64,000 nucleotides of DNA from Lepidodermella squamata (taxonomy: Eukaryota; Animalia; Gastrotricha). Position numbers and translations under genes: made by a program. Below, piece after piece: positions 50 to 53,596 of this stretch (positions within the stretch are counted from its first letter, which is position 1; the number at the start of each line of letters is the position of its first letter). The notes under the pieces were generated by a model, which saw only the letters and a list, made by a program, of their open reading frames with translations, did no database searches and was not told where the DNA came from. Where the stretch lies: positions 930,001 to 994,000 of the forward strand of contig JBLDXI010000004.1 of assembly GCA_047495785.1 (NCBI GenBank), read 5' to 3'.

Positions 50-229
50 CTGATATTCGGTGAGTGGATCACAGCCATCGGCAGCTGGTACGCAGCTGGT
101 GAATCGATTGCTGAACTGCGAGAAGCAACGAACCGAGTTCAACGGCTGTTCTACGAACCCAGTGCCCCAAGCCACGTCGATCGACGCCAGCATGAGGGCT
201 AGTAGCAGAGCGCAGTAATACGAAGCCAT
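50..229 (-). CDS. Exon 1 of Cys-triplet/C-type-lectin family gene, copy 1 (rest lies off the left edge)
   Basis: ATG at 229; MASYYCALLLALMLASIDVAWG signal-like peptide then RCFSQFSNRFTSCVPAADGCDPLTEYQ, ending at the CAG|GT donor used by all paralogues. Confidence 0.85.
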
Positions 230-1446
230 GTGATCAGATGAACCTTGCAAAAATCCAAGGCAAAAATCCAGTTATAAATTTGTGAAAATTGTAACGAATG
301 GAATTAATATGACTGAGCGTTTCATCGTCCGGGTTGGTTGTTTTGGTTGTGGCGCCACACGTTCTGGTCTTGCGGTCGAGCACGCGTTAAAACGTTATCA
401 AACACAATTTTAGGCCATGCTGGTTCATGTTATTGGCGATGCAACTGCGTAGTAGCTGGTCGCGTGTCAAAGAGTCCACTGCCGAGTTCATGCCGGTGTT
501 TACGTCTGGTTTTATCAAATTTTTTTGAAATTTTAACAATTCAAATCACATATAGGTACTGGCCGTGATGTTTTTACAAATTTCAATTCAGCATAAAGCC
601 ATGATAAATTGGCTGTGCTCTATAAATTAAGTAAGCAGAATTCTGCTTACTTTATTTATAGGCTGGTTTAAGGCGGCTGGCATGCCGCCATTGAAATAAA
701 ACTAATAATTGCAAACAAATTATATCACTAATTGTGAAATCTTTTACTTTAAATCCATGTTCGTTTCGTAGTTATTTCTCAGTCCAAATATTTGTAAATT
801 TCAGGGCCGCTTGATAGTTCTGACTATTCGGGCGGTTATTCTACCAAAATACAGGTCCGATAATTCTCTATCGATTGAATATGGTGTTGCGTGGAAACGA
901 TGTATGGGGAAATGTTTCACGTGCACCTTATAGATTTGACGGGCGCACACTCATTTCCCCAAGTCCAGTAGCGCCGCCAGTGGCGCTTCGACTGCGAATC
1001 AATCTGCCGACTTTTCGCGCAGGAAACTGTTATTTTGTTATTCTGTTCAACTGTTCAACTTATTCCATAGACAGTAGCAAGTAAGTTATCAAAGTGGATT
1101 GCTACGTGGAAAATTGAGGTTTCTGACCTGCTACTTCTGAGCCGTTGATCGCATGACTATGGGCGATGTCTCAAAAACAACAGTCAAGATGAGTCTTCTA
1201 TCGAAAGGATGTAGGCTCATGAACAAATTCTATGAATTTGAGAGAATTCTGTAAATTCTTGTTGAAAATTAGTATGGAAATGCTGTAGTATTGATCAGTG
1301 AACTGGTCGCTCTCGGTTAAACCCTAGTCGAAATCGAATTTTATTGATAGCCCTAAATCCGTGATGTCAAATAGGTAACCTTTTCATTTCAACACACATT
1401 CACTCTTCTGCCTGTTACAACATTGGAATTGACCATTGTTCAAAGC

Positions 1447-3963
1447 TCAAGGGCTTGGCATAAATCGCTCGCATAGTGCTTGTTCAATAGTCACGCCACA
1501 GCTAACTCCAGCATAGTAATAGACGCTCGGCCATGTGGGAGACACCATCCCAGCACAGTCACCATATTCAGGTGAGCCATGCCACTGATTAGTTTTATAC
1601 TCGTAATCGGAGCCATCATCCCACTTGAGCACGCCGTTTTGCGAGAGCGACCCATGTGATTGCGTCATACTTACCACCCGACAATGCCAACCTAGCCTGC
1701 GCAAATTCGTCGTCTGACCTCATTTGAGCTAACTGACCGCCGTTACTGATGCATGCCTGAATTGAGCCAGTTCTACTGCCGTATTCGTATTCGGTCACGT
1801 TGTACACATACAGCACAAAGTACACTTTGCGCATGCCCTTGCAGGTGGCTTCGTCCGGATAGGCGCCAGCAATAGGAATTCGAACTTCGGTGTTTGCATC
1901 GCAGCCAACTGTGTCCAGCAGGCATCGAACTGACGCGTCACTCTTGTAAACGCAACGGTAATAGGCCTATCCAGTTATAAAGATAGAATAAAACAAGATT
2001 AAAAACTAGCTTCACGTGCAATTTGAATGATGTTATATAGACTACCGTAAATTTTACCGTAAATTACAGTAATATACTGACAATTTGAAAGGAGTATTTT
2101 ATCGGAACCTAATTTACAGGGAGCTGAACCTAATTTGCCACTGAAATCAAGATTGGCCACAATAATTCGAGAAAAATCACCGGTAAAGTCACTGTAAAAT
2201 TCCTAGAAGTAAATACCGTAAATTCCCGAATGCCGAATAGTAGTGCCGCCTGGGCATGTATATTTAGGAATTTACGATATAACGTGAATATGGAAAATCG
2301 CAGAAAGCATGTTCCCCTTTGTGTCTCAAAACTGAGCGAAAGTAACTGATGATCAGTTTAAATGAACGGCAAAATAGCAGCGTTGAATACTACGAAATAC
2401 GGTACCCAGAAATGTTGAAAGAGATAAACTCACAGGAGGCGATATATCTTGGATGCATTTGTCGTGATTCGGCTGGAACGTGCCCGATTCCGAGAACAGC
2501 TTAACCTGTTATAGAAAAACTTTAAATTATGGAGAAAACCGGGCCTTTGAGCGGTACCTGAGCTTGATCTTGGGGACAAGCTGCGTAGCAAGACGTTCGG
2601 TTGGATAAATCCTTGCACGAAACGGCATTCTGTTCAAACAAGCGTAATAACTGTTAAGATGCAAAAAGCTATTTGAGATCTCACTCCTAGCAGACAAGAT
2701 GCGCGGTTGATGTAGACTTTGCTGGAATATTGCTGAGTTTCATTGTTAGCAAGGCAGCCAGAGCTTTGAGGTCGGCAGTTGGTGAACTTGCTTGTTGTCG
2801 AATCGAAACATCGGATATGCGGCTTCTCGCTGATCGTAACAGTGACTGTGATTAAAAAACAGTGTGATTTTTTATTTTTTCGCTGTGAAATTCTTCAGCG
2901 ATAATTAACAGGTGTCCCAATAATTGATTACATTGTGCACTGCATGAATGAAAATTCCCGGAACTTTCTTTCAATCATTGATAAATTTGTTCTGACGGAA
3001 ATACCTGAATTAACTAACTATTTAATTTGTCGAAAAATTAAGGTCCCTTATTCCATATTTAGATTGAGAATTTATCTCAGCCATTTCAAATAACCGATTT
3101 TAATATTTGACTCACCCGTGCTGTTTATGCACGACGTTAAATCTGAGTAAATCGTCGATTCAGTGATCTAGAAGAGGAATAATTGAGTAAAATTCAATTG
3201 AGTTTTTGAAACAAAATAGGAAAATTCAACAAAACTAACCCAGTTTTCGGGGCAAGTAAACGGATCGGGAACACACGTTTTGATGACGTTGTTCGAGGTG
3301 CAGCGCCGGAATTTCGACGATTTCTACGATGAATGAACAAAAACTAATCATGAGCACTGTCAACAGAGGTTTGGAAGTTCTTACATCGAAAACAGCTCGT
3401 TGCTTCTCACATTCGTTGAGGTTGTATTTTAAACTCAACGTCGCATTTTGATCGTTGAACCAGAACGTCTGAAATACAAAAGTCATATTAGATCAACGAT
3501 GTGAAAAAGCAGAAACATAAGATCAGAGACTTCACAAAATGAAATGAGGCGTACATTCATATCACCGAGGTTGTTACAGCCGACGTTTCCAGGTACGCAA
3601 AACGGGGTGAGGGCCTCATATTTGTAGCACATTCGGGCATTCTATAGACAAACGAGGGCATTATCAAAAATAATCTGAAGAGTAGAACGAACCCCAGTGT
3701 TGCAGACGCCAGTCGTTCGAAAAATGCCACCCCACTAGTTGGTGAAAAATTCAAAAATCATCAGGTTACTGCACGCGTGCAAGTAAATCCTTGCAAACCT
3801 GGTATTCGGTGAGTGGATTACAGCCATCGGCGGCTGGTACGCAGTTGGTGAATCGGTTGCTGAACTGCGAGAAGCAGCGGACCCAGTTCAATTCTTTACC
3901 TGAAGCCGGGTCACTTGACGCCAGCAATAGGCTTAGAAGGAGAGCACAGTGAACCGAAACCAT
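1447..3963 (-). pseudogene. Cys-triplet/C-type-lectin family copy 2; 10 exons, frameshift inside the CTLD
   Basis: Exons 3963-3799, 3734-3693, 3641-3555, 3468-3385, 3323-3240, 3167-3116, 2845-2685, 2629-2558, 2505-2434, 1966-1447, all GT-AG and in phase. In the last exon WVAL and QNGVLKWDDGS...ALCERF are in different frames (small deletion near 1645 relative to paralogues). An assembly indel is not excluded. Confidence 0.8.
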
Positions 3964-5571: not shown

Positions 5572-7903
5572 TTAGAATGACTCGCATAAAGCGTATAGAA
5601 ATGCGGCACCACAATTAGCTATTACATAGCGAGAGCTGCCAGACATTGGCGTTATAAAGGCGCAGCCATCAGTAACTTGGCCTGTCCATTGATTAACGAC
5701 AAATGCGAAATTGGAGCCATCATCCCACTTGAATACGCCATTCGCTCGAGTCAAGGCGATCCAGGCCGGCGCATCAAGCTGAGGCGAATTTGATACTATC
5801 TGCGCTGCCGCCAGTTCCGTATCTGACCTGATCGTGGCCAAGCTACCACCCTGATTGGCGCATGCCGCTGCTGCGGTACCTTTAGAGGCCGGTTGAGTAA
5901 AATGCACCGAGAAGTAAGTCTTGACCACAGACGTACAGCTGGGTTTGTCCGGATAGGTGGCATTAGCTGGAATTCGAAGCTGGCTAGCCGCATCGCAGCC
6001 AGTTGTACTCGCTACACATCGAACTGTGCCGTCGCTGTTGTCAACACAACGGAAATAGGCCGACTGCAAACAAAAACAGCATGATAAAACAGCATGATAA
6101 AAATAAAACCGATGTCAAGATTCAAATTAACAATAGAGAATAGAGCAAACCCTCTTTTTCTTGAGACGCGATTTCGATATTCCAGTGCTTAAAACCCTCT
6201 TTGACCGGCAATAACACCGGTGTTACAGTTTGCAAAGAAAATTGCAGCTAGATGAATTCAAGGCCAAAATTAATGCCCTTTCACGGAAATGAGGCTCATC
6301 AGCAACAAAAACAAAACAGGAAACAAGACAAATTTGCCTGCTAAATGCTGAAGTTTCGAGGAGATATTATTGTTTCTTTTTTTCAAACAGTTGCTACGGG
6401 GCGGTTCAATTCTGGAAATTTGATCAAAATGATTCATTTACTAGATTCGTGATTTGATGGCAAAAAAGTCTGGATTGTTGAGAACATGGTCTTCAAAGTT
6501 GCAAAGAATTTGAAACTCAAAATGTAGCGGCACATACCATAGTTTTAAAGGTTTGAATGTGAACTCACCACTGGGGTTATGTCCGTGATACATTTTCCGT
6601 GGTTCAACTGGAAGTTGCCCAAGTCTGAGAACAGCTTAACCTGTTGAAGAAAAACAGTTGATACCGGAAAATCAGAGGTTTTGGCTGAGCGTTACCTGAG
6701 TTTGATCTTGGGGACAAATGGCGTAGCACGATGTTCGATTAGATGAATCCTTGCACGAAACAGCATTCTGTTGAAAAGAGATTAACTGCATCAATTGCTA
6801 AAGCAGAAAGGAAAACTTACTCCGAGCAGGCAAGCTGCACGGTTGATGTAGACCTTGGTCGAGTATTGTTGATTTTCGTTGCTAGCGAAGCAGCCCGAGC
6901 TTTGCGGTCGGCAGTCGTTGAACTTTTTGGTCGTAGAATCAAAGCACCGAATGTGTGGCTTTTCGCTGACTGGAACTGTGACTGAGATGACAACGGAAAA
7001 TTCAGTAGTACTCAATTTTTTCAGGGGGAAAATTATTCAAAATTTGGTTGTTAGTTATTGACAAAAATTGAGGCCAGTAAATCACGAACCTGACCCATTG
7101 GTACATGAAGCAAGAGTTGAATACAGAGTCGATCCAGTGGCCTAGAAAAAACAAGAATCAGCGTCAAACAGGAACACATCCAACGTTCCAAATCGCTAAC
7201 CCAGTTGTTTGGGCAGGAGTATGGGTCCGGAACACAGGTCGTAATGACGTTGCTCGAGGTGCAGCGCCTGAATTTTGAAGTCTGGAATAATAGAAACATA
7301 AAGCATAATAATTAATATGGCCAAGTTTCTTGAATTTCTCACCTCGAATGCAGCTTTCTGTTTCTCGCATTCGTTGAGGTTGAATTTCAAACTCAACGTC
7401 GGCCTCTGATCGTCGAACCAGAACGTCTGAGGCATAAATTATACCATTATACTCAATTCCAAATAATTGGTTGACGGGGCTTACATTCATATCACCAGGA
7501 TTGTTGCAACCAACGTTACCGGGTACACAAAACGGGGTAAGGGCGGCGTATTTGTAGCACATCCTGGCATTCTATAGAAAAAACAAGACAAAATTAAATA
7601 AAGATTCTGCAGAAAATTTAACAGACCCCGGTGTTGCAACTGCCAGTTGTTCGTAAGCTTGAGCCAATCTATCGATAGAGAAATATTTGTATTAATCAGC
7701 CGTTCGATAATCTTTTTTTTTGGAAAAAGAACCTGATAATCGGCGAGTGGATCACAGCCATCGGCGGCTGGGACACAGTTGGTGAATCGGTTGCTGAACT
7801 GCGAGAAGCACCGAACCCAGTTCAACGGCTGCGCGCCCAATGCCACGTCGCTTGACGCCAGAATTACGACGGCTAGTAACAGAGCACAGTGATTCAAAGC
7901 CAT
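5572..7903 (-). CDS. Cys-triplet/C-type-lectin family copy 3; intact secreted protein of ~437 aa (signal peptide, 6 four-Cys modules, CTLD)
   Basis: Exons 7903-7733, 7668-7627, 7571-7485, 7426-7343, 7281-7201, 7141-7090, 6981-6821, 6767-6696, 6640-6569, 6063-5572 join into one open frame. CTLD motifs: CxxxGGxLATIRS, WIAL, FKWDDGS, terminal LCE. Confidence 0.9.
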
Positions 7904-10703: not shown

Positions 10704-10985
10704 TATTCATGACGAAAAACGTGAAGACGTCTTTTTATCAGCCGGCGTGTTCTTTGAGTTCGGCGTCCTATCTACGTCACACACACACACACAGAAAATT
10801 ACCCGCCCAAGACGGCACATTTATTGAGCTGACAGTTTTATTTCAAAAATGAAAACTATTTTGAGCGGAAACAATAACGCGTAGAATTTTAAAATGCTCT
10901 TTATTATTTACTTACGATGCAACGTTTCGATGAAGCATCTTAGCGTCACCATCATGCATCTAGGAACTAACAACTATATCGACAG

Positions 10986-11261
10986 TTGGGCTCCATCTTC
11001 CGTACAACCGGCGTCTGCAATGCCGGGGTCTATTCCGTCTTTTTCATCAATCGTATGCCGGGATGTGTTACAAACGCGCGGCTCTTAACTCGTTTTGCGT
11101 ACCCGGAAACGTTGGTTGCAACAATCCTGGTGACATGCAAGTGGCATGCAAGCCTCGTTTCGTTAACCAATAAATTGCAATCCCGCATCGAACTAAAAGT
11201 GAACCGATTCACTAAATGCATCCCAGCTGCCGATGGCTGTAATACGCTCACCGATTACCAG
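10986..11261 (+). pseudogene. Relic of the lectin-family gene: exon 2, exon 3, then part of exon 1
   Basis: LGSIFRTTGVCNAG (exon 2), degenerate MCYK..CVPGNVGCNNPGDM (exon 3), then NRFTKCIPAADGCNTLTDYQ|GT (3' half of exon 1). Confidence 0.75.
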
Positions 11262-11830: not shown

Positions 11831-12148
11831 GTGCATGAGTAAACTCAAGTGACCATTTGAATTAACACAGGGTGACTGAACCGATGCACACAAAACAGGC
11901 CGCCCGCGCGACCCCCGTGTCATTTGGTCGAAATTCGCCTGAGTTTACACAATAGGCATGAGTGCCCGTGATTTGCTCGCTCACCTGTGTTACGCACTCA
12001 ACGCGGCGAGTTTGCGGTTTTCGGAATTCGGATCTTTAGGTGGTCATCTAAATGTATGCCCAGCCGTTTGTTCGGCAAAAATCGGGAAGTATGAGAACTC
12101 AAGGTGAGAAGTCGTAGTTTGAGTATACACGCTCCCGGCCTTAGAGGG
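11831..12148 (-). mobile_element. Inverted copy of the piggyBac left end
   Basis: Reverse complement of ~12401-12717, ending ...GGCCTTAGAGGG|TTAA. Confidence 0.85.
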
Positions 12149-12400
12149 TTAACGAGCTAAAAATAGCTACATAAAAGCTAAAGTGCATGCAAAGTGCTGT
12201 TTTTAGAAGGGTATTATCACGCGACAATTTCGCAAAATTCCAAAAACGTCTGATTTGCTCAAGTTTTATATCATTAGATACAGCAAAAATCAAATAAGAT
12301 CATATAATTCGGAATTTCGGCGTAAAATAAAAACTTTTACCGGCCTAAAAGACTCTAAAAATGGCGATTTCTCGGTAAGGTGACTAAGAGGCAATTTTAA

Positions 12401-15400
12401 CACTCTAAGGCCGGGAGCGTGTATACTCAAACTACGACTTCTCACCTCGAATTCGCATACTTCCCTATTTTTGCCGGACAAATGGTTAGGCCCACTTTCA
12501 GATGACCACCTAAAGACCCGAATTCCGAAAACCGCAAACTCGCCGCGTTGAGTGCGTAACACAGGTGAGCGAGCAAATCACGGGCACGCATGCCTATTGT
12601 GTAAACTCAGGCAAATTGTGACCAAATGACACGGGGGTCGCGCGGGCGGCCTGTTTTGTATCATCGGTTCATTCACCCTGTGTTAATTCAAATTGTCACT
12701 TGAGTTTACTCATGCACTCTGTCAATAAATGTTTAAAATAAATTTTTTACATTATTTTAAGTACAACTTTTTATGAGTATGATGAGAAATTAAGACACTC
12801 GCAGCTTTTACGTTGTTACGTTATACCTACCATGCAAAATGGGAAATAAAAGAACCGCCTCGAGTAGAAACATGAACATTGTCGATATTCATTTACCGAC
12901 ATTTCCGTCATCCTAACTTTTCGTAATTCATGGATGCGGCTGAAAAGCAGCAAGTCTACAGCATGGTTGAATCCGATGAGATCGGTTCAACCGATTCCGT
13001 GCTCTCGTCATCGGACGATGATCTTGACCGGCCACTGGCTGACTTCAAGGTGCCTGGACAGGCCAAATGGCAAATGCTGAATGAAGATCGCCAACTGCAC
13101 ATCGAAAAATGCGACCTGAAAAGTCGCCCCACCGACGACTTTGTAACACGAGTCGAGGCGCTAAGCAAAGGTAGGTAGTTAGCTTTATACTAATCCGAAT
13201 TATATGTTCTTTTCTATAGGTATCTGATATTGCGTCGCTTTGGAAAGACGAATGGCAAGCCGAGTGGTCGGCTGATCCTCAGGCAAGCACCAGCAAGCAG
13301 GCATCGCACGATGAAGATACCAACGGGGAGAGCGGCAGCAAGAAAACGGCCAGCGATACCGCCAAGAAGGCCGAGCCGAGCGCCGACAGTGGTGATGACG
13401 AAACCGGCGAAGTTACAAGTGGCACGACCGTCAAGAAGCGCAGCACCACGACCGCCACCAAGAATACCGCCAGCAAGGCCGCCCAATGTGACTACGACGG
13501 CAGCGACGAAGATGATGAACTAAAACCGAAGAATTCTAAGAAAACTGTAAAACGCGATCGAGCTGGCGGTTCGAAGCGCGCTGAGAAGCGGAAACCGAAA
13601 ACCGACGAGCGTTACTCGAAGGTTCTGCCGATTTTTCTTCTGATGTTTCCCGTGATATCGATGTTGGTTACTGAAACCAGCCGGTACGCGGCGCAGATGT
13701 ACGCTAAGAACCCCGGAATCGGCTAATTTGTTGCAACAAATGTTCACGAAGTCTTCTGTTTTTTGGCGTGTGCTATAGCCATGGGTATCGTCAATTTACC
13801 GTCGGCCAGGCTGTATTGGGAAAGTTCCGATTCAATGCTGTACCAGCCGTACTTCGCCAAGATCATGTCGCGCGATCGTTTTAAGCAACTAGTGCGTTTT
13901 CTGCGACGACGCCGCCCTACCTCGAAACGACCCTGAATATGACAAGATCCACAAGGTTCGGGCGTTTCTCGACCGTTTGCGAAACGCTTGGCTCGCGAAC
14001 TTTGAAATCGGTGCTCAGGTTCGTACAATAAGCTTTTTGTTATTTTTTTACTGAAATTGTCTATGCTCATCAGGTTGTCGTCGACGAGCAAATGGCCGCA
14101 TTCAAAGGTCGAACAACCCTCAAACAGTATATGCCGGCTAAGCCCGTCAAACGCGGGCTCAAGTTTTTCGCTCTGGTAATCTGGTAATTATTTTTCAGGC
14201 GATATTCTAATATTTTTTTGCAGTTGGCACCGACGATTCGGAAGCGGGATTGGCCGAGCGTATCGTATGGCGGTTGGCGACGGCGATTGCTGGCTACTGG
14301 CGCGTCCTCTACATGGACAATTGGTTCACGTCTTTACCGCTGTTAAATCACCTATTGGGCAACAAAATCCATTCGGCTGGGACTGTTCGAGCAAACCGGG
14401 CTGGTCTCGACTTGGCTGTTCCGATGAAGAAAACCTCAAAGACCGAACGTGGCGCAATGCGATTCAAATTTTTCGGCAATGTCTTTTTCGCTTCATGGCT
14501 CGACAACCGCGTCGTTAATTACCTGTCGACTTGCCACACTGGATCTGCGACCGCAAATATCGAAAGACGAGGCAAGGATGGTAAGAAAATTGAAGTGCCT
14601 TGCTCACCGGTGTCGGTCGACTACCAGCAGTTCATGCGCGGCATTGACGTCGCTGATCGTCCTCGCGAGAGCTAAGACAATTGCACCCTGCCCAGCAAGA
14701 AGTGGCACCGGCCAGTCGTCTTCTACGGCTTGTAAACCGCGATAAACAACGCCTTCATTGCCTACAAGCAACTTGCGAATTGTCCCAACTACCCGTCTCT
14801 GCTGTTTCGTCGCCGTCTTATCGACGAGCTGCTTGCCGCAGGAATGTCGCGTCAGCGAGCAGTGGCTCGGAGGCACAAAATTCACGAAAACATCGACGCA
14901 ACAACCGTGACTGACGCTTGGAAAGATGGCGGACGTTGGCCTCGGCACATCGGCAATTACCCCGGCACTCAGCGCACTCGTATGCGCCAGTGTGCGCTAT
15001 GTGCGGCCACGAAGCCTCTTGGCAGCCGAATTCCGGCATCAGCGTACGAATGCCAGGTCTGCGACGTTGGGCTGTGCATCGATCCTTGCTTTCAGCAATT
15101 CAGACCTCACGCCGGCTGATTTTTCACCATTTTTATCATGAATAAATGAACCCATTTTGAGTAAATACATGTTGATCAGAGTAATTTTCAGCGCGTATTG
15201 TGTTGACTCAAGTGCGAGTTTTTACAAATTATGAAGTGTAAGTAAACTCAAGTGGTTACTTAGTTATAATCGGTTTTGAGTGTCGTAAAAATCGCCAATC
15301 CAAAACATCACCCCCTAAACTGAGTTCATACAAGTTGCAGCTTAGTTAACTCAAAATGAGTGATTTTTCCCCAATGAGTATACTCAAATTGTCAAAACTA

Positions 15401-32690: not shown

Positions 32691-33343
32691 CTTCAGGAGT
32701 CTTATTTCTCCTCGAGAACAATGCCTATTGTTAGATGTTTGTAAATAATTGCTTCACCCAATATTCAGAACAAAGTCATACATTTCCAGACAAGTAACAG
32801 CGGTTATATTTAAGGCGATTGATTTCGTGGCGAAAACTAAAATTGATGGATTTGGCAGACAAACTGTGAGATGCCGAACGATACAAACACAAGTTTTGTT
32901 TCTATATAGTGCCTCTTGTAAGCGTCCTTGATTGAATGGCTTTACGCTGTTTACGGCAAGTTGATAATAATTTCCACGTAAAACGTGCGTATCCTGCTTT
33001 TAACAATTTTAATCGAACGTAATTCGAACAAATCCTGAGGGCGACCCATTTATTTCACTGTCAAAAATGATCTCAGTGCACTTGACACTTGACTAAGCAC
33101 GCGATTGCTTCGATTACGCAATCACCCCTCAACCAGTGTTTGCCGACTTGAAATAAAACACCGACAAGCCAAAAAATGTCAACCAAAAACTCGCGATTTT
33201 ATTGAAGATGATACACAGTAGAAAGTGTGCCTCAAGCAACCATTTTTTCACTTAAATACGGCGTCGCGATTCAATTTTTCATTCACTCAATTTTTCTCTA
33301 CAACTTTTTTAGCGAATTACAGCTTATTGTTCCGGGCAATAAA

Positions 33344-40556: not shown

Positions 40557-42591
40557 TGATACAATTTTCTTCTGAAGCACGCCTTGTGACTTGTGAGATT
40601 GTCGTAAGAAGCCGAAGTAAAATAATACTTTTCGGGGAAATTATATTCTTTTGACACGTGACAAGTTGATTGATTTTCATCAATGGCCAAGATCGACGGG
40701 CTCCGAAAAATTTAAACCAGAAACTATTAAAACTATTAAATAGCATACAATTCGCGAATATTTATGTGGAGGTCGCAGATTCACGTGAATGAGGACGCAA
40801 ACAAAAATGCTGAAACGCGAAGTTTGGCAATTTTCGACATAGACTGAATCCGATCCCGTTCGATCATGCAAGATCCTGAAATTGAGATGAAAAATTAATA
40901 TCTCTCAGCGGAACCAAAGCCGTAACATGCCAAGAGTCATTTGTTGAATAATTTACGAATTTCAAGCTAGGAAGGAGTTCTGAAATTCCTACCTAATATT
41001 CTTAACAATCTTGAATTTCCCGAAATAATATATTATTTATGGCTCATTTCGGTCTTTAAATTATTTAATTTTTTTCAATTATATTCCATATAAATATTAT
41101 TTTTATAATAAAATGCAGAGGAATCCCCTGAAACTTAATGTGTATCACGCGTAATTGCATCCAATAAATCTATCACCGATTATCGTTTTGAAAAATCGAA
41201 AATCGGTCTCAGGAAAGCAGCATCACAGGCCGCCTTCCAAGCTTTATATTTCTTTCTATGTAGATTTTGTTATCTTATAGCGGAACCAAATTTACGGTGA
41301 GCGGAACCTAATTTGCTGTAGCGGAACCTATCAAAATTCATTTTTTGAATATTTCTACGAAATTTAGGCTAAGGATGAATTTTGAACTGAACACTTCGTC
41401 TTATTGAGAATGTTGCCCTGAATTCACTGGTGAATTTTCTAGAATTATTGTGACCAATCTTGACCTGCAAGAAATGTCAAAAAACCTATTTCAGGCTACT
41501 ACAAAATTCCAAAATTTGGCTCCGCTGACAGGAGGACCCTTGTTATATCGAAAATATCGACAATATTATCTCTACACTTGGTCATAGCCAATTTTTAAAT
41601 GCTGAAAAATTGTACGTGAAACGTGAATTACTCTCTTTGACGAGTTGGCAGGCGATTTTATTGCTTCGAAGATGCCCACGTTTTAATTGATAACTAACAG
41701 AGATAACATGGTAATAAATCGATTTGGGTCACGCCAACGCAGACGGTGTGACCTGATTTATATTACAAGCCTTATATTCGATGTTGTGCGTGCGTTTTAT
41801 TACCAAAACATCACCACATATTATTACTATTATTGTTATCTTACTTGAGAATCGCGTTTTAATGTGGGGCATATTCAAATATTTTTATTATTTTTATACA
41901 GAATTTGATTTTTTGAAAAATTTTAAATGTCGCTTGTTACTCTGCTGGTCAAGGTGCAAATTTTGATAGAATTTTTCCGTAAAATTTGTGAATTTATTTT
42001 AAATCACAGCAACTATTGGATTGCATGACCAGGGCTGATTTGCAGACTCTGTTGACGAATCACTTCAATTATTCGGCGACAAACCTCGCGCCGAAAAAGA
42101 AGAGCGAACTGCGCGCAGTGTCGAAGATGGACTTTTCGATGAGACGGGGATAGCGAGTTCATCTAAAAAAAATTGCGCTCGCGTGCTGCGCACGCTCGCA
42201 TTAATGTCTCACAAGCTGTTACATCCTTTTATTCAAACGAAAATATCGTTCACATTTTCAACTCTCGTCATTGATTCTGTTCTTCGATTAATTTTTATCG
42301 AAAACTTTTGATTTAATACTAAAAATCAATTTCATATCAACAAAAAATAACACGCGATTTGCTTTATTTCATTCATTTCATTTATTTTTTTTACTCTCTT
42401 GGAAAAGTATTTGAAACTTCACTCTATTTTCCATTAAATTATTTTCATTTTCTGCAAAAAGAGCACTTAAAAGTCATTCAGAGCAGGAAGACTAAACTTG
42501 ACGGGGCTTGACGAGCAGTGTGTAATAGGGACAGCCAGGGACAGGTCAGGCACAGGTGACGACCTCCAAACATTCCGCTACAGCAACTACA

Positions 42592-42720
42592 CCAATCACA
42601 GGGCGCGCACATTATAGCGCACAAAAGCCGTCCAATCAGCGCGCGCGCGCATTATAGCGCGCACAAATCGTCCAATCAGCGCGCGCGCGCATTATAGCGC
42701 ACGCAAACTGGCCAATCAGC
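42592..42720 (+). repeat. Short tandem repeat (~40-bp unit, 3 full copies plus a partial), each unit with a CCAAT box
   Basis: CCAATCA-GCGCGCGCGC-ATTATAGCGC-ACAAA unit repeated directly upstream of a GC-rich exon-like region. Confidence 0.75.
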
Positions 42721-42839
42721 GAGCGAGCGCAATGAATTCCAGCTGAGACCGGGATGCCATCCACCCCTGCCAGGGACGACCGGGCCGCGAGGTAGGGATG
42801 ATCCCTGGCATCCCCCCCGGCATCTTCGACACTGACTGC

Positions 42840-43771
42840 GCGACTGCGTCGACCGCGCCATATCCGACCTGGAAAGCGGCTATGAAAACGAACAGCTGTT
42901 GAATAGCATCGTCGAAATTGGCAGGTAACATTCTTTTTTCTCGGAAAAATTCTGTAAAAAACGGTAACATTTCCAGGTACAAAAATATTGCCAAAGAAAT
43001 GTGAGTTTTCGCGATCAATAATATTTTTGCAATTTTAATTTTCATGATTAATTTTAGGAAGACAACCGCGGCAACTTCCGGTGAGCCAGTTTATAAGGGG
43101 CCTGTTACTATTCGGAAGCGGAAATCGGTAACTTTAAAAAAATTTATTAAAATAGTTTTCGAATTTTTCAGAATTTTTTTATTTTATTTTTATTTTCTTC
43201 CTATTTTCGCAGATTTTTTTGCCAAGTGACGAAGGGACGAATAGTAATTCAGATGAGCTTGTTACTTCGGAGTGCTCCTCGTCATCCTTAAACTCGCCGG
43301 CATTTCATTCAAATTATCGATTTCGAGAACGCCAAAGTTCGAAGAAAATCGCTAGAAAATCGCGATATTTCCTCCGCGAAACAATCACAACACCGGCTAA
43401 TCGGTTCTTCTTCACTCCTTCCGAAGGCGTAAGTTGGAAAATATTCGATTCCCAGATTCGATGCAATCAAATAATTGTTACCTGTCAAAAAAATTCATTA
43501 TTCTAATTTCTGTGTACCCGATTTTTTTTAACTTAGGATAAGACTTGAAAAAAACATTAATAATTTCAATCTGAAAAATTATCCTGCTCTAAATTCAGGT
43601 TTTTGCTAAGAAAAATTCGATCAATTTGAAAATTCAAATTTTTTTGTCATTTTGAAATTTATTTTTATATAGACGATCGGATCAGTTTTCGATAGTACTA
43701 CGGTGTTCGACCAAAGCAGCGGCGATGTGTACCTGCCATCAATCGATGTTGAATCCACGTCAACTTATTAA
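42840..43771 (+). CDS. Probable small multi-exon gene of unknown function (Ser-rich, basic); start codon unresolved
   Basis: In-phase GT-AG chain: ...DCVDRAISDLESGYENEQLLNSIVEIG, 43058-43127 KTTAATSGEPVYKGPVTIRKRKS, 43213-43428 IFLPSDEGTNS...PSEG, 43673-43771 TIGSVF...STY*; AATAAA near 43868. Confidence 0.5.
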
Positions 43772-44294
43772 ACTTTCAAGACTCTTTTTTTCGTTCGATT
43801 TATTTCAATAACGAAAATGTAGCAGCAATTTATCTGATAGCTTTAAACAATTTATTAACGACTCTGAAATAAAACACCTTTAAACTGGCATTTCGATGTA
43901 AAAAAATGTTGCTCTTTCAATCTTGTCAATTGCTTTCTACTTGAAATATCCGGTTACAAGGCAGGCAGCTGCTTTCAATGTAGCTAATCGGCTATTAGCT
44001 ATTCAAAATTCGGAAAAATTTCAGAAATCTTTGAAAATTGATTATCCCCGAAATTGTGAAAGGTCAATCATTAAACTGACATTTTTAAAGGTTTTATCCA
44101 ATGTTCCCATTATTTTTCAAAAAAAATTCGAATTTCAATTTTTTCGTAATTTATATGAATTTTTATGAAACCTTGAATGTTATTAGAAAAAATATTTCTT
44201 TGATCACCCTTTATTTGATTTTTTTAAATAATTTTCGAGATTTTTCTAGGACTGTTTAATATCACTTTTTCAAAATCCCAATTCTAATTTTCAG

Positions 44295-44581
44295 GTTCAA
44301 TACGGCTAAAATTACTGAGAGAGGCCTTTGATAGTTATTTTTCGCAAAATGGAACCGCGATTGGCATTGACTCGAAAATCATCGAACAACAGCAGCAGGG
44401 TGTCTACAAGTTGGCTGCTTTACCGCGATTGGCTCGGCTGATCAAGCGGTTCGATCGAGCGGAACGGCACAGTCGATACGTGGCGTGCCTTAAGCGGTAC
44501 GGCCTCAATAAAACGGCTAGGTTAACGCTGTTACTCGTTCAGAGATGCAGCCGCGAAGCGGCAAATCGAATTTTCGAATGA
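44295..44581 (+). CDS. Possible terminal exon of an unidentified gene
   Basis: TTTTCAG acceptor, ~95 open codons (SIRLKLLREAFDSYF...REAANRIFE*), AATAAA at 44611; upstream exons not found. Confidence 0.35.
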
Positions 44582-44794: not shown

Positions 44795-47700
44795 ATGATT
44801 AGAGTAGCCGTGATAATTTGTGCGGTATTTATTACTGGCTCGTATGCTCCGCCTCCCACTCCGCTATTCGTAATTTCGCTTTTCTAATTTAATTAAGTTT
44901 TATTTTCAATTATTCCAGGATGCTCCAACTAAAGCTGTTTTGAAACAAATCAATGATCACCTGAGTGATGCTCATGGTTTGGCTAAGGTGAGTCGAAATC
45001 ATTGAATTTCAAAAAAATCTTGAAATTTTGAAAATTTTAAAAATTCCATATAATTTCAAAAAAATTCGTAAAAATTAAAAAAAAAGTTAACAAATTTCAA
45101 CAATGGCATTTTCATGTAATTTTCAATTTTCAAAATAGTAGACGTAAATCGGTTTAAATGGGAATTTAAGGGAATTTAAGGGAATTTATAGAGAATTTAA
45201 TAGAACAAAATTCATAAAAATCATAAAAATTCAATAAGGCTTGAAATCATAATATTTTCAATTTTCATGCCATCAAAATTGTCGTTCTACTTCAAGTTGA
45301 CGAATAACTTTCACCTCTGTTTTTCGATTGCAGAATGCTGATTTTGCGTCGACGCAAGTTATCGATTTTACCGCCAATCAAATGGTGCCGATTTTCAGCC
45401 AGCAACAAGCCGCCATGATTTACAACTACCTGCTGAACCCGAACGGTTTCACGACCCCGGCCGACAGTGTGGTCCAAAAATGGGACAGTCCCATCTTCTA
45501 CAAATTAGACGCTAGTGTACCAGGTAATACAATGAAAATTCGCTCAAAAATTGCATGAACAATTAATTTTCATTTTGAAATATTTGAAATTAAATTTTTG
45601 AAATTTTATCCGATTTAAATTTGTATTTTTCTTTAATATAGCCAGCCCGGACGGTGCTAAAATTGCCAATATTCTGACTGCTTTCGCTGATGCGACGGGT
45701 GTTGCGTTTCAAGAATGGCAAGGGGCGCCCAGCGGTAACGGCATCATCATCGAAAAATCAGACAGGTATGTATAAGCTTGTTTCGCGCGGTTTTAAAGAA
45801 TATTCAAGCGTGAATTTTTGCTGCCAGTGATTACGCGTTTTACGGCAAAATAGCGACCGCCGAGCCGCAGAAAATCTCCTACAGCGACGTGAAAAATTTC
45901 CTACTCGGCCTTCTCATCACTTTCGGCTTCGTGAGTTTCGAAAAATGTTTACAACATTTTTTTGAATATTTTTGAAATTTTAGAAAAATTCGACATAAAA
46001 TAGGATATTATTGAATTTTGCCATTTGACATTCGGATAAAATATCGGGAAAAATGTGGTACAAACGGGTAAAAAACCGAAAATTACCGAGCCGGGTACCA
46101 TCAAATTCCTTTAAGTTAATGATAAGAGCTTCTCTTATCAAAGCCTAAGACATATTTTTATTCGATATAATTTCAGAAATATGTTTCAAAATCTCGAATT
46201 TGAATTTTCAAATTTAATTTTTTTGCGAAATTTGTCTCGCTAATAAATTTTCGAATTTATTTTTTATACAGCCTCCTGAACATACCCGAATCGATCGTGA
46301 TTACTCAATCACCGTTAACTGGGCCGCCATTGCCTGGTGAGTAATTGAAAATTTTCATCTCATTTTAATTTTGAATTTAATTTTCTAAATTTTTCAGGGA
46401 TTATCGTTTTTTATTCGCAAATATTCCGTGGCACGATACGCGAGCTTCGGTGCCGTTTGATTTTGCCTCGGCGTCGCTGTTCAACCCGCATTCGTTTTCG
46501 AACGACATTTTCCTGCGCGCTTTTCTGCCGAAAGATCTGCGCGATCTGGCGACAATTGCCTCGAACAAATATGAACTGTCGCTCGAGGACAAGAAACGGC
46601 TGTACATCCTGCAATGGGGTGAGTAAACCAAACTAGTAGAAGTGATATTATTCGAAAAATTTAAGACTTGGTTATTCCAAGTTCAGAATTTCTATAATTC
46701 TCCGAAAAACCGGAATACTTTCGTGAATTATATGCTTACATTTTTGAGTAATTGAAAAAAATTCCACAGAGAAAAGCGAATTGTTCAGCGAATTTTTTCA
46801 CCTTGGAAATTGGTCGAATTTTATAGCGGAAAATCAATTTATTTATCAGCTGAATCTAAACTTTTTTTTCTAATTTTACATTGCTCAAAATTTAAAAAAA
46901 AATAATGTAATATAAAAAAAGAGGAAAGTAAAGTTCCAAATTTTGATAAATGTGAGCGGCTTTTTCCATTAATTTTGTTAATGCAAAATCCAGACCAAAA
47001 TCAGAAGATGAAGGAAAAATTTTCAGGTGAAACCCAAATTAACCTTGGTCTCATTAAAATTAGAGGTTCCCGAGAAATTTGTGGGATGTTCTTCTGATCT
47101 TGAAATTTCCATGGAAACGTTTTATGCCTTTTTCTGATTTCACCAATGTTTTCGAAAAAAATTCTGTGAAAACTCGGGAAAACCCGATGGTAAATGGATT
47201 GGTATTTTTTGGTTTGTTCCCAATTTTTTCATATCAACAGCCGCTTTTACACGAGAGCGTAAGTATGAAGTGTAATTAATATGTGCATCAATAATAAAGA
47301 CAGAAAATTGAGATTTTATGCAGGTGAGAGAAATTTCGAATTTTTTATGGGTCTAAATAAGTGCACCACCTAAAATGAGGTTCCAGCACTAAATTTGAGA
47401 GTGCGTTTACCTAATTTGCAAACAGCTCGCACTAAATCATTTGGGCACCTAAATATGAGTTCCAGCACTAAATATCAGCATTCAGTGCCTATTACTGTAT
47501 TGTTAATCCCAGGCGAGTCTCTCAGGCAATCTCAACCACGCGCCCTCAGACAATGAATGACAAGTTTTTCACTGTATTCCGTATTACCGGCAGCTCAAGC
47601 CACTTTTATAGTGCTGAAGGTAGGCATGGGTTTACGGTTCCGAGAAAAGTTTAGGAGTTAGGATTAGGATATGATGCACCCGCGATTTTAGGCTCGCTTG

Positions 47701-50700
47701 CATAATTTTAAGAGAAATACGGATGACTTGAAAATATTGCATATTATGCAAATGAGCCATAATGTTGAGATTAGCTTCACTTTATGACACACTCTTTCGA
47801 TTGTGAATTGTTGAGTTGCTCACTGCCTACAACTCTGCTACGGAACGCCGCCATTGGCTTTTTACGCGGGACCATCATGGTGGGACCCTGAGTGGCAGTA
47901 TGGACTGTATTTAGGTGGCAGTATGGGCTTTATCCGAAACTTTGAAATTTATCAGCTTCAAGAGTAATTATAGCGTGAGACGTGGCGATCTCTATCATCG
48001 CATTCTTTGTTTGAAGGTTAGGTGTTGCGCAATAGTGATCACAGTCAGCTTTCACCTTTTGAATTGCATAGGATAGATATAGGACTGAAATGGTTTGCCA
48101 CGTCACGATTTGGCAGGAGGTGAGTGGCTGTAGTAGCAAATAACATAATAGTGCTATTTGACAATGACTAAGGTAGACTAACAATGAGTCCCTCCTGAAA
48201 GAGGCCCTCCCAACGTAACTTGAATTTCAACATTCTGCCTTATTTGCATATGCGCACATTTTTTACGGCCTGGCAAACTTTTGACCTTTGACCTACAAGT
48301 GATGCCTGACCCTGCTTGCGATTAGCGGCGGATATTACCACCAAATCTGCAGTGTCCAAGTGTGAAAAAGCAAGTGTTTATGGTTGATTGATTGAAGATA
48401 GGGGATAGGGAATAGGGCCCAAGTCGATTTGCAGATCCTCGAAGTAACTGCTCTCCAGCGGCCTCGCTAGTGCGGCATGATGGCATTCCTATCCACGAAT
48501 TAGGTGGTGGCTTTGTATATTTAGTGTTGGAGTTGCTAATTTAGTGTTAGATAGGATTAGTGCGTGTGACTTTCAAATTTAGTGCTGGAACCTTAAATTT
48601 AGTGCTGGAACCTTATTTTTAGTAGGTGCAGTTGGCACACCCATTTTTTATGGGCGTCTTTCGAAACCACTTTTCGAAACAGTCAAAGATGTTATATGAT
48701 TGATCGGCATAATTTTCAATAAATCCTCTGCAAATTCAGCATAAAATTCTGTACAAGGCGCATTCATCACCATAAAATTCATACAACGCCTGAATTTCCT
48801 AGAAATATTCGAAAAGCAACCTTTCGCTTACCTTAAATTAGGTTCCGCAACAAGAAAATTTGGTTCCATTTGGTAATATATTTTTTTAATTTTTGTTTAT
48901 TTATTGATAAAAATTACAAAAATTACAAAAATTACAAATCAATCGAACAATTTATTTTCGGAAATAATTATTTTTTCATTAATTGGTCATTTATTTGTAT
49001 AAAATTAATTTCTAGGTTCATTGTGTTCATCGACCACGCCGTCATGCTTGAACGGCGGCTTCCCAGTGCCAGCCGCCAACGCACCCGGCAGCCCGACCTG
49101 CAGCCGATGCATCTGCCCAACGGGCCTATCAGGCGCCGACTGCTCAACCATCGGCGCCGCCCCATCGCCGTGCAACCAAGACCTCGTCGATATCCCACCC
49201 TGCAAACGCGTCTCCTTCGCCTTGCCGACGTACGCGAGCGGCGACGCGTGCACCCGGCGCTACCGAACCGCCGGCAATGGCTTCATCCTCGGCTTCGACG
49301 GCCGCCCCGGCCTGAGGTGCGGCGCCCTGAACAACGACCTGGCGTGTGAGGACTACGTCGAGGTGAGGGCAGTGGCGGCGGATGGCAAGTTGGGGCCGGC
49401 GAGGCGGTTTTGCGCGTGCGGCGTCACGGCTGGCCGCGTTGCGACCATCGACACGAATGAGGTCATCGTCACGTTCCAGAGCCGAGCGGCTACCCCGGGA
49501 ACGCGCGGCTTCAAGCTCAACATCTACGCCACTTGCCAGGTAAAAATATTGAAAATAATCAGAGAATTTGTGCTGATTTATTTTTTAATTAATCTTTTTA
49601 ATTTGGATAACAATTGAAAAAATTCTGAGAAAATTCGAATTAATCTCACCCTCAACTTTGAATTTTCAAATTTTAAAAATTCACAAAATTGAAATTTTGA
49701 TTTCGGGCAAATTAATGAACAAAAAATTTCGTTTGGTTTGAATCTCCGAAAATTCTGAACTTTGAATCGAACCTTTTGGGGGATTAAACATTCCCGACAG
49801 TTTGGCCAGTACAAATTTAAAAATTAATTCGAAAAAATTGATTATAAAACATTAGGAATTTTACTCAATATTATGAAAATTGGGACTGATTTGAGAATCG
49901 CAATTTTCGAACTCTTAATTTGAATGAACCTGTGTAGAAATGCCTGGAAAATTATTTTCTGAAATTTTGAAATATAGCCTTGGACCTGACCTCTGGACCT
50001 TTAATAAAATAGTTCATGGGATGGATAATCAATCGCTTGTCTCAACGATGCCATTGCTCCATTTATCTGAAAATCCTGAAAATGTTCATAATATTTTCAA
50101 AATTTCGAATTCGTAAAAACGAAATTTTGAATTTGCAGGAAAATGAAAAAATTAATTTTTAGTCTTTTGCTCAATTTTAATTTTTTTTTAATTTTTAATT
50201 TCTGAGAAATGGGTGATTTCCCGTGAATTCTTATATAAATTTTTTATGGGAATTATTCTTCCGAATATGAATTTCGTTGAATAATTTTTCATGCGTGTAT
50301 AGGGTGTTTCGGCTACGCACTACTCGAACCGGTGCCGCATCACTCCATCCGGCTACGACTACATCGGCATTAAAAGTGTCGCTGAGAACAACAAGACGTG
50401 CATGCCGTGGCCGCCGGGCATCATCGACGACGAGCTCAGCTACCCGATGGGCGATCGCCAGGCGTCGAAACACTACTGCCGCAACCCGTACCGCCAGCAG
50501 TCGGAGCCCTTCTGCTACACGGCGGCGTCTTACATCGAAACAGCTCAGTGCAATCCGATCCCGCACTGCCGTAAGCTACATTTCCCATCATTGACATCGT
50601 CATTTAAAAAATCCGATATAAATTGAAAGTGATATTTTCGAAAAATTTCAAAATATTTCAAATTTTTAATTTCAACCTTTCAACATTATTTAGAAGTTGG

Positions 50701-51732
50701 GTGAACAAAATTTCGAAAATAATATTAAAAAATTGCGAAAATTCCCAATTAAATCGCCAGAGAGAAATATACTATTTCCGATTTTTTAAAATCTAATACA
50801 GAATTTTCTGTATCTGAATCTGCTGGATTTTTCTCAAAAAGAAATTTCATCATCAAATCATCAGTTCCCAATTAGCAATTATAAAATTTAGCGAAAATTT
50901 TTAAATATCGTGATCTCTAGCTCCTGGACAACCGTTGCTAAGGTGGAGCATCGCACTATTTCATTTATTTTTTGATAGCCGCAACACGTTGTTTTTTCTG
51001 TTATTTTCAGACTCGACCGTTCGATGCAATCGGCGCAACGGCGACTTCAAGGCCTGTCGTGAATACAAGCCGAAGGAACCGAAATTCGGCTGCCACCCTG
51101 ACGAATCCACGGTTTGAATAAGACAATATGATTGAGGTTAAATTTGAAAATTCTATCTTTGAACCCAGTTGACGCCACTTCGTGTATTCCCGGACCCCGA
51201 TTCTTGCAATATTAACGTAACTTTTCTTGAAATCATAGCATTTTCAATAGATTTTATGTGAAAAATCTATGTTTAGGGTGTGAAAATGTGTTACGACATA
51301 GACAGCTCGACGATTAAGTGCGTTGAAACGTTCCGTCAATGCCCTGCCCCTACCAGAAAGGTTCGCGTCAAAATTGCAGCTTTCAGTGCGGAATCTTCTA
51401 ATTTTTGTGAAATTTAAATCAGATCGGCCACATTAGCTTGTACAAACGATTCGAGAAGAACATGCGCTTCTGTAAGATGGGCAAGGTAAGATTCCTGATA
51501 TTTTGGCTCATTGGTGATTCGATCCGATTTATAGGTTCCGCACTTCCGCTGTGTCACATACGCTGATCCGAATTCGTTCAAAGCCTGCCGACCTGTCAGT
51601 GTTGGGTGCCGCAAAAACGTCGAGGTAAGCAGCGACTGTGACCATTTCCACAAATATAATGCTGGACTTTATCTATAGTATTCGGTTGGCGAGTACGAAG
51701 ATGTAACCAGTTGCATTCCCGAGTGGCTATGA
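44795..51732 (+). CDS. Secreted mosaic protein ~692 aa: signal/pro region, astacin-like domain lacking HExxH, EGF, CUB-like, kringle, one Cys triplet
   Basis: 15 in-phase GT-AG exons: 44795-44869, 44919-44987, 45334-45523, 45642-45765, 45828-45930, 46272-46336, 46398-46618, 49016-49539, 50303-50570, 51011-51111, 51169-51216, 51277-51360, 51423-51485, 51535-51624, 51679-51732. Astacin traces KWDSPIFY, GF..EHTRIDRD, PFDFAS, LSLED; EGF CLNGG..CICPTGLSGADC; CUB CEDYVEVR..RFC..VTFQS..RGFKL; kringle GYDYIG..CMPW..YCRNP..PFCYT..IPHC. Confidence 0.88.
47349..48642. mobile_element. Mutator (MULE)-like non-autonomous element in intron 7 of the astacin-like gene
   Basis: 9-bp duplication ATTTTTTAT on both sides, GGG...CCC termini, imperfect long TIRs with repeated GGTTCCAGCACTAAA / TTTAGTGCTGGAACC. 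Confidence 0.7.
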
Positions 51733-52309
51733 AGCGAAAATGACAGCTTTGACTCGAGCCATGAGATTTCTCTTGATTTCTCTCTTGAGATTCTTGAATT
51801 CAACTATTTATTTTTCTCGCGACAGGACTCATGCTTTGAAAACTTCATAATCGAATATATTTATTTGAGTAAATTGTAAAATAAATAAATAAATAAATTG
51901 TTCGTAATCTTGCTGAATATCAACTTGACATTCAGCAAGATTACGAACAAGCTAACAGCGAACAAAATCATCTTCTTGGTATTTTTGGATCAATCAGTGA
52001 ATGCAAGACATTTTTTTATTGCCGACGAGCACAGGAAATAATATATCGATACCTTGAACGGTAGCGTTATATTTGAATTCCGGTTCACTCAACAAGTGAA
52101 TAGCTGATCAGTTTGAAGGAAATTCTACATTTTTCCAGGATTTCCATGGAAAAAAAATAAAAAAATGATAAAAGACGAGCAGTGATCACCTCGTCATGAT
52201 AGCTGCGTGCAAAAATGATATCGATACAATTTTTTAAAAGTGACTTTTTCAGTTTATCGAAGAAACTGTTGTAATAAACAGGGATTTCACATTCAATCAA
52301 GACCTGTTT

Positions 52310-52426
52310 ATGTCCAGGTCCAATGCTAATTCGTGCGCGGTGTGCGTATGGTCACTGTCTCTAAGGTGGCAATCGCAGCGGGCGGCAATCTTATGTCTTA
52401 CGGAGTTTGCGAAACCTATGTTGAAT
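52310..52426 (+). pseudogene. 3' remnant of a CTLD exon
   Basis: Ends GVCETYVE*, with a 3' flank similar to that after 53596. Confidence 0.5.
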
Positions 52427-53275
52427 GAGGGATATGTAAGGCATTGAGGCTGCCGTTAGCTTTTAAAATGGCTGTTACGTATGAGGATGATACTTTATAA
52501 TCTGCTGCAAACAAAATTCCAGTAAATATAACCGGACTTATGGTTTGGAGATATTTACTGACAGGCCGGATCTCGACTTTTCGACCGTCCTGGATCTCCC
52601 CCGAATGAAAAAAAATTGTTTGCTGCATTGGGAAAAGTGACTTGTAATTTCAAACAAAAATCGAGCGAAGCGAGGACATTTTGAAGATTTTCCATTGAGA
52701 CACGTTACAAAACCGGCGAAACAGCAAACATCGGGCTAGATTCATTTTATTGCCCAGCCTGGCCATCCCTCTGAAAATCGCACACTGAGATCCGTGCAAT
52801 AGCCAGACGAAGTCCTGGAATTGTTCTCTTTTTCACACGACAAGAAAGGTTTTCGCTGATCAGGATAATTAAATAGATGTTAGCCTTTTTGATTCGAGAA
52901 ATGAATGAAAAAAGTGATGACCTACTTGCGTAAAATCATCGTCGCTGGACGTGGAACAGCTCAGGTTCAATCGAAATTCAAGCAAATTTTCAAATCAGCC
53001 TAGCTAAACCTGCGACCAAGCGCAGTAATATTGAGCTGATTGAGCGTATAAGTGCGGAGTACAGGAAAATCATTGTTAGAAACTTCCAAGTGAGATCCAG
53101 AGAGTTCAAAAAGATGACCTGAGATGACCCTGTGGCGCCAGAGGGGCAAAATGTCGATTTTTCTGACCTGTTGTTTTTATGACTTTATGACAGTTTTCTA
53201 GTAATTCGACTACGCTGATTTCAGCGCAGCTCACAGAATTGTCTAATTCATTATAGTTTTGGAGATATGACATAG

Positions 53276-53596
53276 GGAAACCTGGCGCCGCCGCGTCCAG
53301 ATGTAGCCACAAAGTGCTCAGAACTAAGTGGCATCTTGTCAACTGTTAAAACAGCTTCCGACCTAGCCCAGGTTGCCAGCCTTTTACCCACCGCTAGCAG
53401 TGCATGGGCAGGTCTTGCTCCAGATGCCGGCGTCCTGAAATGGTCGGAAGGTTCTGCTTTCACATTCGATCAATCTCTGCTCGGCAACTCATTGAATAAT
53501 AATCAATGTGGCATTATTCTTTCTTCTTCTTTGTTGTATTTGACTGATTGCGAGAATGGTGTATTATTCGCAGCATGTGAAACCTATGTTGAATAA
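53276..53596 (+). CDS. Orphan C-type lectin-like exon (open frame, upstream exons not found)
   Basis: TKCSELSGILSTVKT..AWAGL..LKWSEGSAFTF..NQCG..TDC..AACETYVE*; same CTLD type as the family but divergent. Confidence 0.65.
   Translation, partial: GNLAPPRPDVATKCSELSGILSTVKTASDLAQVASLLPTASSAWAGLAPDAGVLKWSEGSAFTFDQSLLGNSLNNNQCGIILSSSLLYLTDCENGVLFAACETYVE

Follow-up and report, generated by a model that had tools for sequence, protein, structure and literature searches.

The window analysed here, a stretch of 64,000 nucleotides from the gastrotrich Lepidodermella squamata, contains five full-length genes for apparently secreted C-type-lectin-like proteins (G2-G6), of which two are intact and three broken, together with a fragment at its edge (G1). 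The intact gene G3 (5572-7903, minus strand) has 10 exons and encodes 437 amino acids, comprising a signal peptide, six four-cysteine modules and an atypical C-type-lectin-like domain (CTLD); its introns are all of the GT-AG type and mostly 53-64 nt long. The other intact member, G6 (33344-40556, plus strand), also has 10 exons and encodes 438 amino acids, with an intron 6 of 5.0 kb. In G2 (1447-3963, minus strand), 10 exons encode six intact modules and a CTLD that is frameshifted near position 1640. Broken exons are more numerous in G4 (16074-22609, plus strand), where exons 2-3 are damaged, exon 7 is frameshifted at its start and a transposon lies in intron 6, and in G5 (27371-30811, minus strand), which has a stop in exon 7 and a frameshift near 27750. 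The window edge cuts G1 (50-229, minus strand) down to exon 1, which encodes the signal peptide and the first half of module A1. In addition, a decayed and rearranged fragment (10974-11261, plus strand) holds exon 2, exon 3 and part of exon 1 in scrambled order.

The lectin gene family described in an earlier note on this DNA is thus present with its six modules per gene, and the motifs quoted there were found in the sequence, although several exons of G4 and G5 and the CTLD of G2 are broken and only G3 and G6 are intact. By contrast, the membership of an orphan, divergent CTLD frame at 53306-53596 (plus strand; 29% to G3) was not borne out. This frame has no module exons upstream in a six-frame search of the window with a lectin-only HMM, and it is a candidate member at most. 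Where comparisons within the window needed spliced models, exons were joined by their coordinates. The lectin-like proteins begin with a hydrophobic stretch that is not followed by a membrane span, as would be expected of secreted proteins. Many divergent copies of the family occur in a DNA run from this species, and a search of sequencing runs with G2 and G3 found no RNA runs containing G3.

The neighbouring gene (44795-51732, plus strand) encodes in 15 exons a pseudo-astacin of 692 amino acids, with a signal peptide, a pro-region, an astacin-like domain, an EGF domain, a CUB domain, a kringle and three four-cysteine modules. The EGF-CUB portion is matched in the Atlas at 0.90 and the kringle by the Kringle family at E 2.1e-10. 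Its active-site region (45828-46618, plus strand) is degenerate with respect to the published motif definitions (PMC9848320): LGLLITFGFPP stands where HExxHxxGxxH is expected, and SASLF replaces the SIMHY Met-turn. The zinc motif does not occur in any frame of the window. Directly after its expected site, the motif ExxRxDRD is found exactly, at 46278, and is unique in the six frames of the window, a mark of descent from the astacin family. The exon that carries it reaches E 0.09 with Pfam Astacin, which is below the cut-off; the domain is here split over five exons. At the sequence level, all three zinc-ligand histidines, the catalytic glutamate and the methionine and tyrosine of the Met-turn region are replaced. 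This loss of zinc ligands and catalytic residues supports the earlier proposal that the neighbouring protease is non-catalytic. A literature search yielded no paper on lectins of gastrotrichs or on astacins that have lost catalysis.

What connects the two kinds of gene is the four-cysteine module, which follows the pattern C-x8-10-C-x6(3)-C-x16-26-C and is present six times in each lectin. The three copies in the astacin tail (a, b and c), encoded by six exons at 51011-51732 (plus strand), have cysteine spacings of 9/11/18, 9/6/22 and 11/6/16, respectively. An HMM built from the lectins only gave them 9.0, 5.6 and 24.2 bits, scores that were reached by 4, 52 and 0 of 1000 shuffles with the cysteines held fixed. 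In the six-frame window, the only significant non-lectin match of this HMM was the exon at 51535-51624 (E 9e-6), so the profile similarity between the lectin modules and the tail peptide is above chance. Introns coincide with module borders, and a phase-0 intron lies 4-7 residues past the third cysteine in four of the six lectin modules and in all three astacin modules. Because a lectin-only HMM recovers an astacin tail exon and the phase-0 intron position is common to both, the homology of the modules in lectins and astacin tail is real. Each module probably contains two disulphides.

The demonstrated unit is this single module of about 45 amino acids rather than the triplet of about 140 amino acids that had been proposed as a three-fold domain. 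The G3 module A2, encoded entirely by exon 7 (6821-6981, minus strand), was predicted from a 14-sequence alignment to adopt a beta-beta-beta-alpha fold, that is, three strands and a helix (pLDDT 84, pTM 0.58), and the order of elements predicted for a second, different module was identical. Thus, according to these models, a module folds alone as a three-stranded sheet with a short helix. The earlier guess of a beta-trefoil or prism is left unsupported, since a terminal helix in each repeat fits an all-beta trefoil or prism poorly, and the single repeats, which were modelled one at a time, matched no trefoil. The typing of modules as A-B-C, with the astacin gene ending in one such triplet, stands in part. 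There are indeed three tail modules; the linker from A to B is 7 residues long in all three triplets; the B modules have the longest loops between the third and fourth cysteines (22-26) and all start 4 residues past a phase-0 intron; and a phase-1 intron precedes both astacin module a and lectin A2. Nevertheless, astacin module c is nearest to lectin A2 (z 7.2; hhalign 95%) and not to C, sequence comparison detected no extra closeness within the C1/C2 and B1/B2 pairs over other classes, and native module order did no better than permuted orders. The constant linker, the features common to middle modules, the shared phase-1 intron and the module counts of six in lectins and three in the astacin would all suit three modules that pack as one obligate pseudo-three-fold domain of about 140 amino acids. 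Such packing is nonetheless quite improbable, as lone modules are predicted to be folded and permuted orders score equally well or higher.

Database searches point to a module without a confident match to any described family. With the 14 module exons, Pfam gave nothing above its cut-off (best E 0.11), and neither an Ig match to these exons nor a match to the modules in PDB sequences or by ESM Atlas features was found. Rfam and metagenome contigs gave no match, and Foldseek retrieved nothing for the module at E<=0.001 from the PDB and viral structures. Among 1.84 billion proteins, the module profile had 20 matches, none convincing. Pfam scans of ten of these identified eight as LRR-type proteins, one as a ShK repeat and one as a tandem-repeat protein, and by eye the remaining ten resembled BspA LRRs; all were partial and were rejected. 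A search for homologous proteins also yielded none for the EGF-CUB and kringle exons or for module C2, a result of little weight given that this search is length-limited. The best structural matches were MbtH-like proteins (PF03621), which share the three-strand-plus-helix topology predicted for the module (Z 4.6, rmsd 2.1, 42 aligned residues; Atlas TM 0.62), but this Z is under the level usual for unrelated best matches and the likeness is thus an analogy only. In contrast to the module, these proteins are bacterial and cytoplasmic and lack the cysteine pattern; identity is 7-19%, and Pfam gave no PF03621 match to the module.

It is also very unlikely that the module belongs, as a highly divergent form, to a known family of small disulphide domains of the Kunitz, Kazal/FIMAC or Fn2 type. 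The hairpin and terminal helix, with an aromatic-x5-Cys end, do look Kunitz-like by eye, and the APPI Kunitz domain (Z 2.1) and C6 FIM (Z 2.4) rank low among the structural matches. However, the Pfam and PDB sequence searches found no match, the number and spacing of the cysteines differ, and the Kunitz superposition is poor (TM about 0.3, rmsd about 6). A Kunitz identity was rejected on this structural evidence (TM about 0.3, Z 2.1) and on four cysteines against a six-cysteine pattern. The claim of the earlier note that a diversifying family of CTLD proteins and a non-catalytic astacin have an unnamed disulphide-type module in common is supported.

The two parts of the lectin-like proteins evolve differently. 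The heads match Lectin_C (PF00059) at E 7e-8 to 8e-10 (G3, E 6.8e-8), and the fold match of the G3 head (Z 15.7) also places it in the CTLD superfamily. The EPN/QPD and WND motifs are absent from the G3 and G6 heads, which are therefore not classical Ca2+-dependent carbohydrate-recognition domains, and the name lectin is used loosely here. In the intact pair G3-G6, the modules are under purifying selection (dN/dS 0.08-0.21). Two younger pairs, each of which contains one broken gene, show where changes accumulate: between G4 and G6, pN/pS is 0.25 (CI 0.15-0.41) in the stalk and 1.11 (0.75-1.79) in the CTLD (Fisher p 4e-5), and between G3 and G5, whose CTLDs are 91% identical in DNA, replacements cluster in the final 36 CTLD codons (14/36 vs 6/80, p 9e-5). 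The family is thus diversifying, as had been claimed, with heads that change fast and a conserved stalk. A pN/pS of about 1 in the heads fits relaxed constraint as well as positive selection. The nearest paralogue also shifts along the gene, from G2-G4 at 95% in exon 1 to G4-G6 at 89-94% in exons 4-10, with G3-G5 at 91% in the CTLD. In the sequences compared, mosaic ancestry and the rate contrast between stalk and head are both evident.

The best explanation, to which we give about an even chance, is that these secreted proteins serve in recognition and are variable, with a four-cysteine stalk that is shuffled and specific to the lineage, and that a dead astacin carries the same module as a binding scaffold. 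The lineage-restricted module would have spread among secreted proteins by exon shuffling, often three copies in a row. In each of G2-G6, the six modules may act as a conserved stalk on which a fast-evolving, non-canonical C-type-lectin-like head is displayed. Turnover by birth and death, together with segment swaps between paralogues, would then produce a repertoire of secreted binders, most likely directed at the surfaces of microbes or food particles. The neighbouring astacin, an intact pseudo-enzyme with a module tail, may serve as a binding scaffold.

A rival reading, put forward in the earlier note, holds that the modules attach to one another or to a shared partner, assembling variable lectins on the pseudo-astacin in one extracellular complex. 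The modules are better conserved than the heads, perhaps beyond the needs of a passive spacer, and the genes adjoin; however, the astacin modules are only remotely lectin-like, two of the three weakly so, and binding does not follow from a module shared through exon shuffling. Docking is accordingly unlikely, and still less probable is a phylum-specific extracellular recognition system in which a large repertoire of secreted proteins, whose rapidly diversifying CTLD heads recombine between genes, would be joined by the four-cysteine adaptor to dead astacin-EGF-CUB-kringle scaffolds, comparable to a lectin/MASP complex of independent origin that works without proteolysis. About as unlikely as docking is a structural secretion, in which proteins of adhesive glands, cuticle, mucus or egg shell would cross-link a matrix through disulphide-rich stalks and head divergence would reflect weak constraint. 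Secreted cysteine-rich repeats and a CTLD pN/pS not significantly above 1 agree with this, and sea-star adhesive footprints contain an astacin-CUB protein, one that keeps its zinc motif (PMC9382459). By contrast, head replacements concentrate C-terminally, the even number of cysteines per module suits bonds within modules, and the family has a high gene turnover, as is more usual where proteins serve recognition.

Variable secreted recognition proteins of this kind would represent, in a barely studied animal lineage, a repertoire built from a conserved shuffled stalk, a fast head and pseudo-enzyme carriers. The module itself is an apparently undescribed extracellular domain, given here with a first fold prediction. 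Astacins were not found in Gastrotricha according to a 2023 review (PMC9848320), and the L. squamata gene is an astacin-family record for that phylum. The principle, in which lineage-specific cysteine modules are combined with CTLDs and pseudoproteases, is already familiar, so the interest is specialist rather than general unless docking is shown.

Several known systems resemble parts of this one. CTLD (PF00059) proteins share the sequence and fold of the heads, whereas the heads here lack the sugar-site motifs and follow an unnamed stalk. Kunitz/BPTI and Kazal/FIMAC domains are likewise small secreted hairpin-plus-helix units in tandem, but have other cysteine numbers and spacings and fit the module poorly in structure. 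The pseudo-astacin shares with the astacin-EGF-CUB metallopeptidases (M12A; nematode NAS and blastula-protease type) the order signal-pro-astacin-EGF-CUB and keeps ExxRxDRD and the glycine of the zinc motif; in contrast to them, its catalytic residues are replaced and it ends in a kringle and three four-cysteine modules. Finally, the VIgL lectins of snails (CREPs/FREPs; PMC5433772) form a large and diverse family of secreted proteins with tandem N-terminal modules and a C-terminal lectin-type domain. The stalk of the gastrotrich proteins, however, would consist of four-cysteine beta-beta-beta-alpha modules instead of IgSF domains, and it is the head that forms their variable part.

The C-type-lectin-like copy G3 (7903-5572, minus strand) is spliced from ten exons into a product of 437 aa, in which a hydrophobic N-terminus is followed by a stalk of six modules with 24 cysteines (in order A1, B1, C1, A2, B2 and C2) and a C-type lectin-like domain (CTLD), or head. 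Besides G3, one further copy, G6 (33344-40556), is intact. G2, G4 and G5 have the same exon set, but the genes are broken; G1 is truncated by the window edge, and a scrambled fragment of such a gene lies near 11 kb. As animal DNA, the window has a GC content of about 0.41 and GT-AG introns of 50-60 nt. EPN, QPD and WND motifs are absent from the heads. One DNA sequencing run of a 2024 study contains the window, introns being matched exactly; a second run of that study, with 101 Mb of contigs, does not contain it. In the first run, 839 contigs matched G2/G3 at >=85% identity, mostly over exons; this number is not a copy number, although it points to a large family.

Several other elements lie among these genes. 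Intron 6 of G4 contains transposase-like frames (17469-19272, minus strand) with WSD...QNK and GHSQMECDSVH motifs, which resemble Sola-type DDE elements; no significant Pfam match was obtained for them. Intron 6 of G6 holds a TA-flanked element of about 4 kb (34610-38597) with imperfect terminal inverted repeats of about 28 bp, and the corresponding G4 site (near 21207) appears empty. Right after G4 there is a non-LTR reverse transcriptase fragment with a weak RVT_1 match (22775-23257, plus strand). Decayed CTLD-derived pieces at 23778-24071 (minus strand), 31854-32050 and 32400-32846 are 74-82% alike, one pair being inverted. Elsewhere are a PiggyBac-like transposase zinc finger (14736-15116, plus strand; PF13842, E 4e-5), a Tc1/mariner-like DDE_3 transposase split over two frames (55420-56416, minus strand; E 4e-15), a 322-bp inverted repeat of 93% identity that is probably a MITE or foldback element (11831-12717), a GGGTTA repeat tract some 90 bp long (62620-62709) flanked by 92-bp inverted repeats (62488-62964), and a GC-rich ORF of 242 aa with no Pfam match, perhaps a retroelement gag-like frame (60417-61145, plus strand).

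The 15 exons of the pseudo-astacin gene (44795-51732, plus strand) join into an open frame of 692 aa that no stop interrupts. By published motif definitions (PMC9848320), its product retains the astacin-specific ExxRxDRD motif and the zinc-motif glycine; none of the three histidines remains, nor do the catalytic glutamate or the methionine and tyrosine of the Met-turn. The astacin-like domain is followed by EGF-CUB, a kringle and three four-cysteine modules (a, b and c). Upstream, a possible gene with small exons (42000-44560, plus strand) includes a 40-bp tandem repeat (42592-42731). Downstream, two CTLD remnants (52253-52430 and 53306-53596, plus strand), possibly relics of a CTLD tail, both end in CETYVE-stop and share 82% DNA identity over 72 nt.

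That lectins and pseudo-astacin have a module in common, as the earlier note proposed, is borne out on two independent grounds, sequence and gene structure. Against a profile made solely from lectin modules, a, b and c score 9.0, 5.6 and 24.2 bits, values reached by 4, 52 and 0 of 1000 shuffles with cysteines fixed. By sequence, c is strongly supported, a moderately and b weakly. The exon at 51535-51624 is the sole significant non-lectin match of this profile in the window. With profiles of the lectin triplets, the whole astacin tail (51011-51732) scores about 14.7 bits, versus about 9 in the best shuffle. In addition, a phase-0 intron lies 4-7 residues past the third cysteine in every astacin module (a, b and c) and in four of the six lectin modules.

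Whether the unit is an A-B-C triplet, as first described, receives a mixed answer. A linker of exactly 7 residues joins A to B in each of the three triplets; the middle modules, which begin 4 residues past a phase-0 intron, have a long Cys3-Cys4 loop; and a phase-1 intron precedes both astacin a and lectin A2. Thus, a three-module block was probably the unit of some duplications. Sequence order and profiles speak against the triplet: permuted orders score equal to or above the native one, neither B1/B2 nor C1/C2 are mutual best matches, and the lectin module closest to astacin c is A2. Nor need the block be a folding unit, because A2 alone (6821-6981, exon 7 of G3) is predicted by AlphaFold2 to fold (pLDDT 84, pTM 0.58) into strands 4-9, 15-20 and 30-33 and a helix at 42-47, and C2 with the same elements at lower confidence. 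These predictions argue against the suggested beta-trefoil or beta-prism; an obligate triplet fold seems improbable.

The module had not been recognised as a named domain, and searches of Pfam, PDB sequences, Atlas features, 1.84 billion representatives and metagenome contigs gave no match either. As the databases cover the lineage poorly and the 46-column profile is shallow, this does not prove that other lineages lack the module. Structure searches returned weak MbtH-like topology alone (Z 4.6, rmsd 2.1), which we read as a common small arrangement; that the module is a remote member of a known domain seems more improbable still. A small domain, real and apparently undescribed, is common to a pseudo-astacin and to a CTLD family with birth-and-death turnover.

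Stalk and head have evolved differently. Most modules are 65-85% identical (aa) among copies, with dN/dS of 0.08-0.21 in the intact pair, whereas heads are 39-56% identical, except in the young G3-G5 pair (82%), where replacements are concentrated in the final third of this domain (p 9e-5). Between G4 and G6, synonymous divergence is alike (stalk 0.23, head 0.24), but replacement divergence is 0.06 in the stalk versus 0.27 in the head (p 4e-5), a contrast that uniform decay after pseudogenisation cannot produce. The excess of head pN/pS over 1 is not significant. The nearest paralogue differs along the length of the lectin-like gene, indicating recombination or conversion between paralogues.

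In the likeliest reading, to which we give an even chance, the lectin-like products would be secreted and serve in recognition, with a variable non-canonical CTLD held out on a conserved stalk braced by disulphides; the dead astacin would carry the same shuffled module and work as a binding scaffold. Docking through the modules, the role first suggested for the shared unit, is unlikely, and a structural secretion is no likelier; these readings, the obligate triplet and the remote known domain are not all mutually exclusive. What the window newly offers is the tested module link to the pseudo-astacin, the fold prediction and the stalk-versus-head contrast. As recognition proteins on a conserved stalk, the CTLD family would work like the known stalk-plus-lectin repertoires (PMC5433772), yet it is not a member of them.
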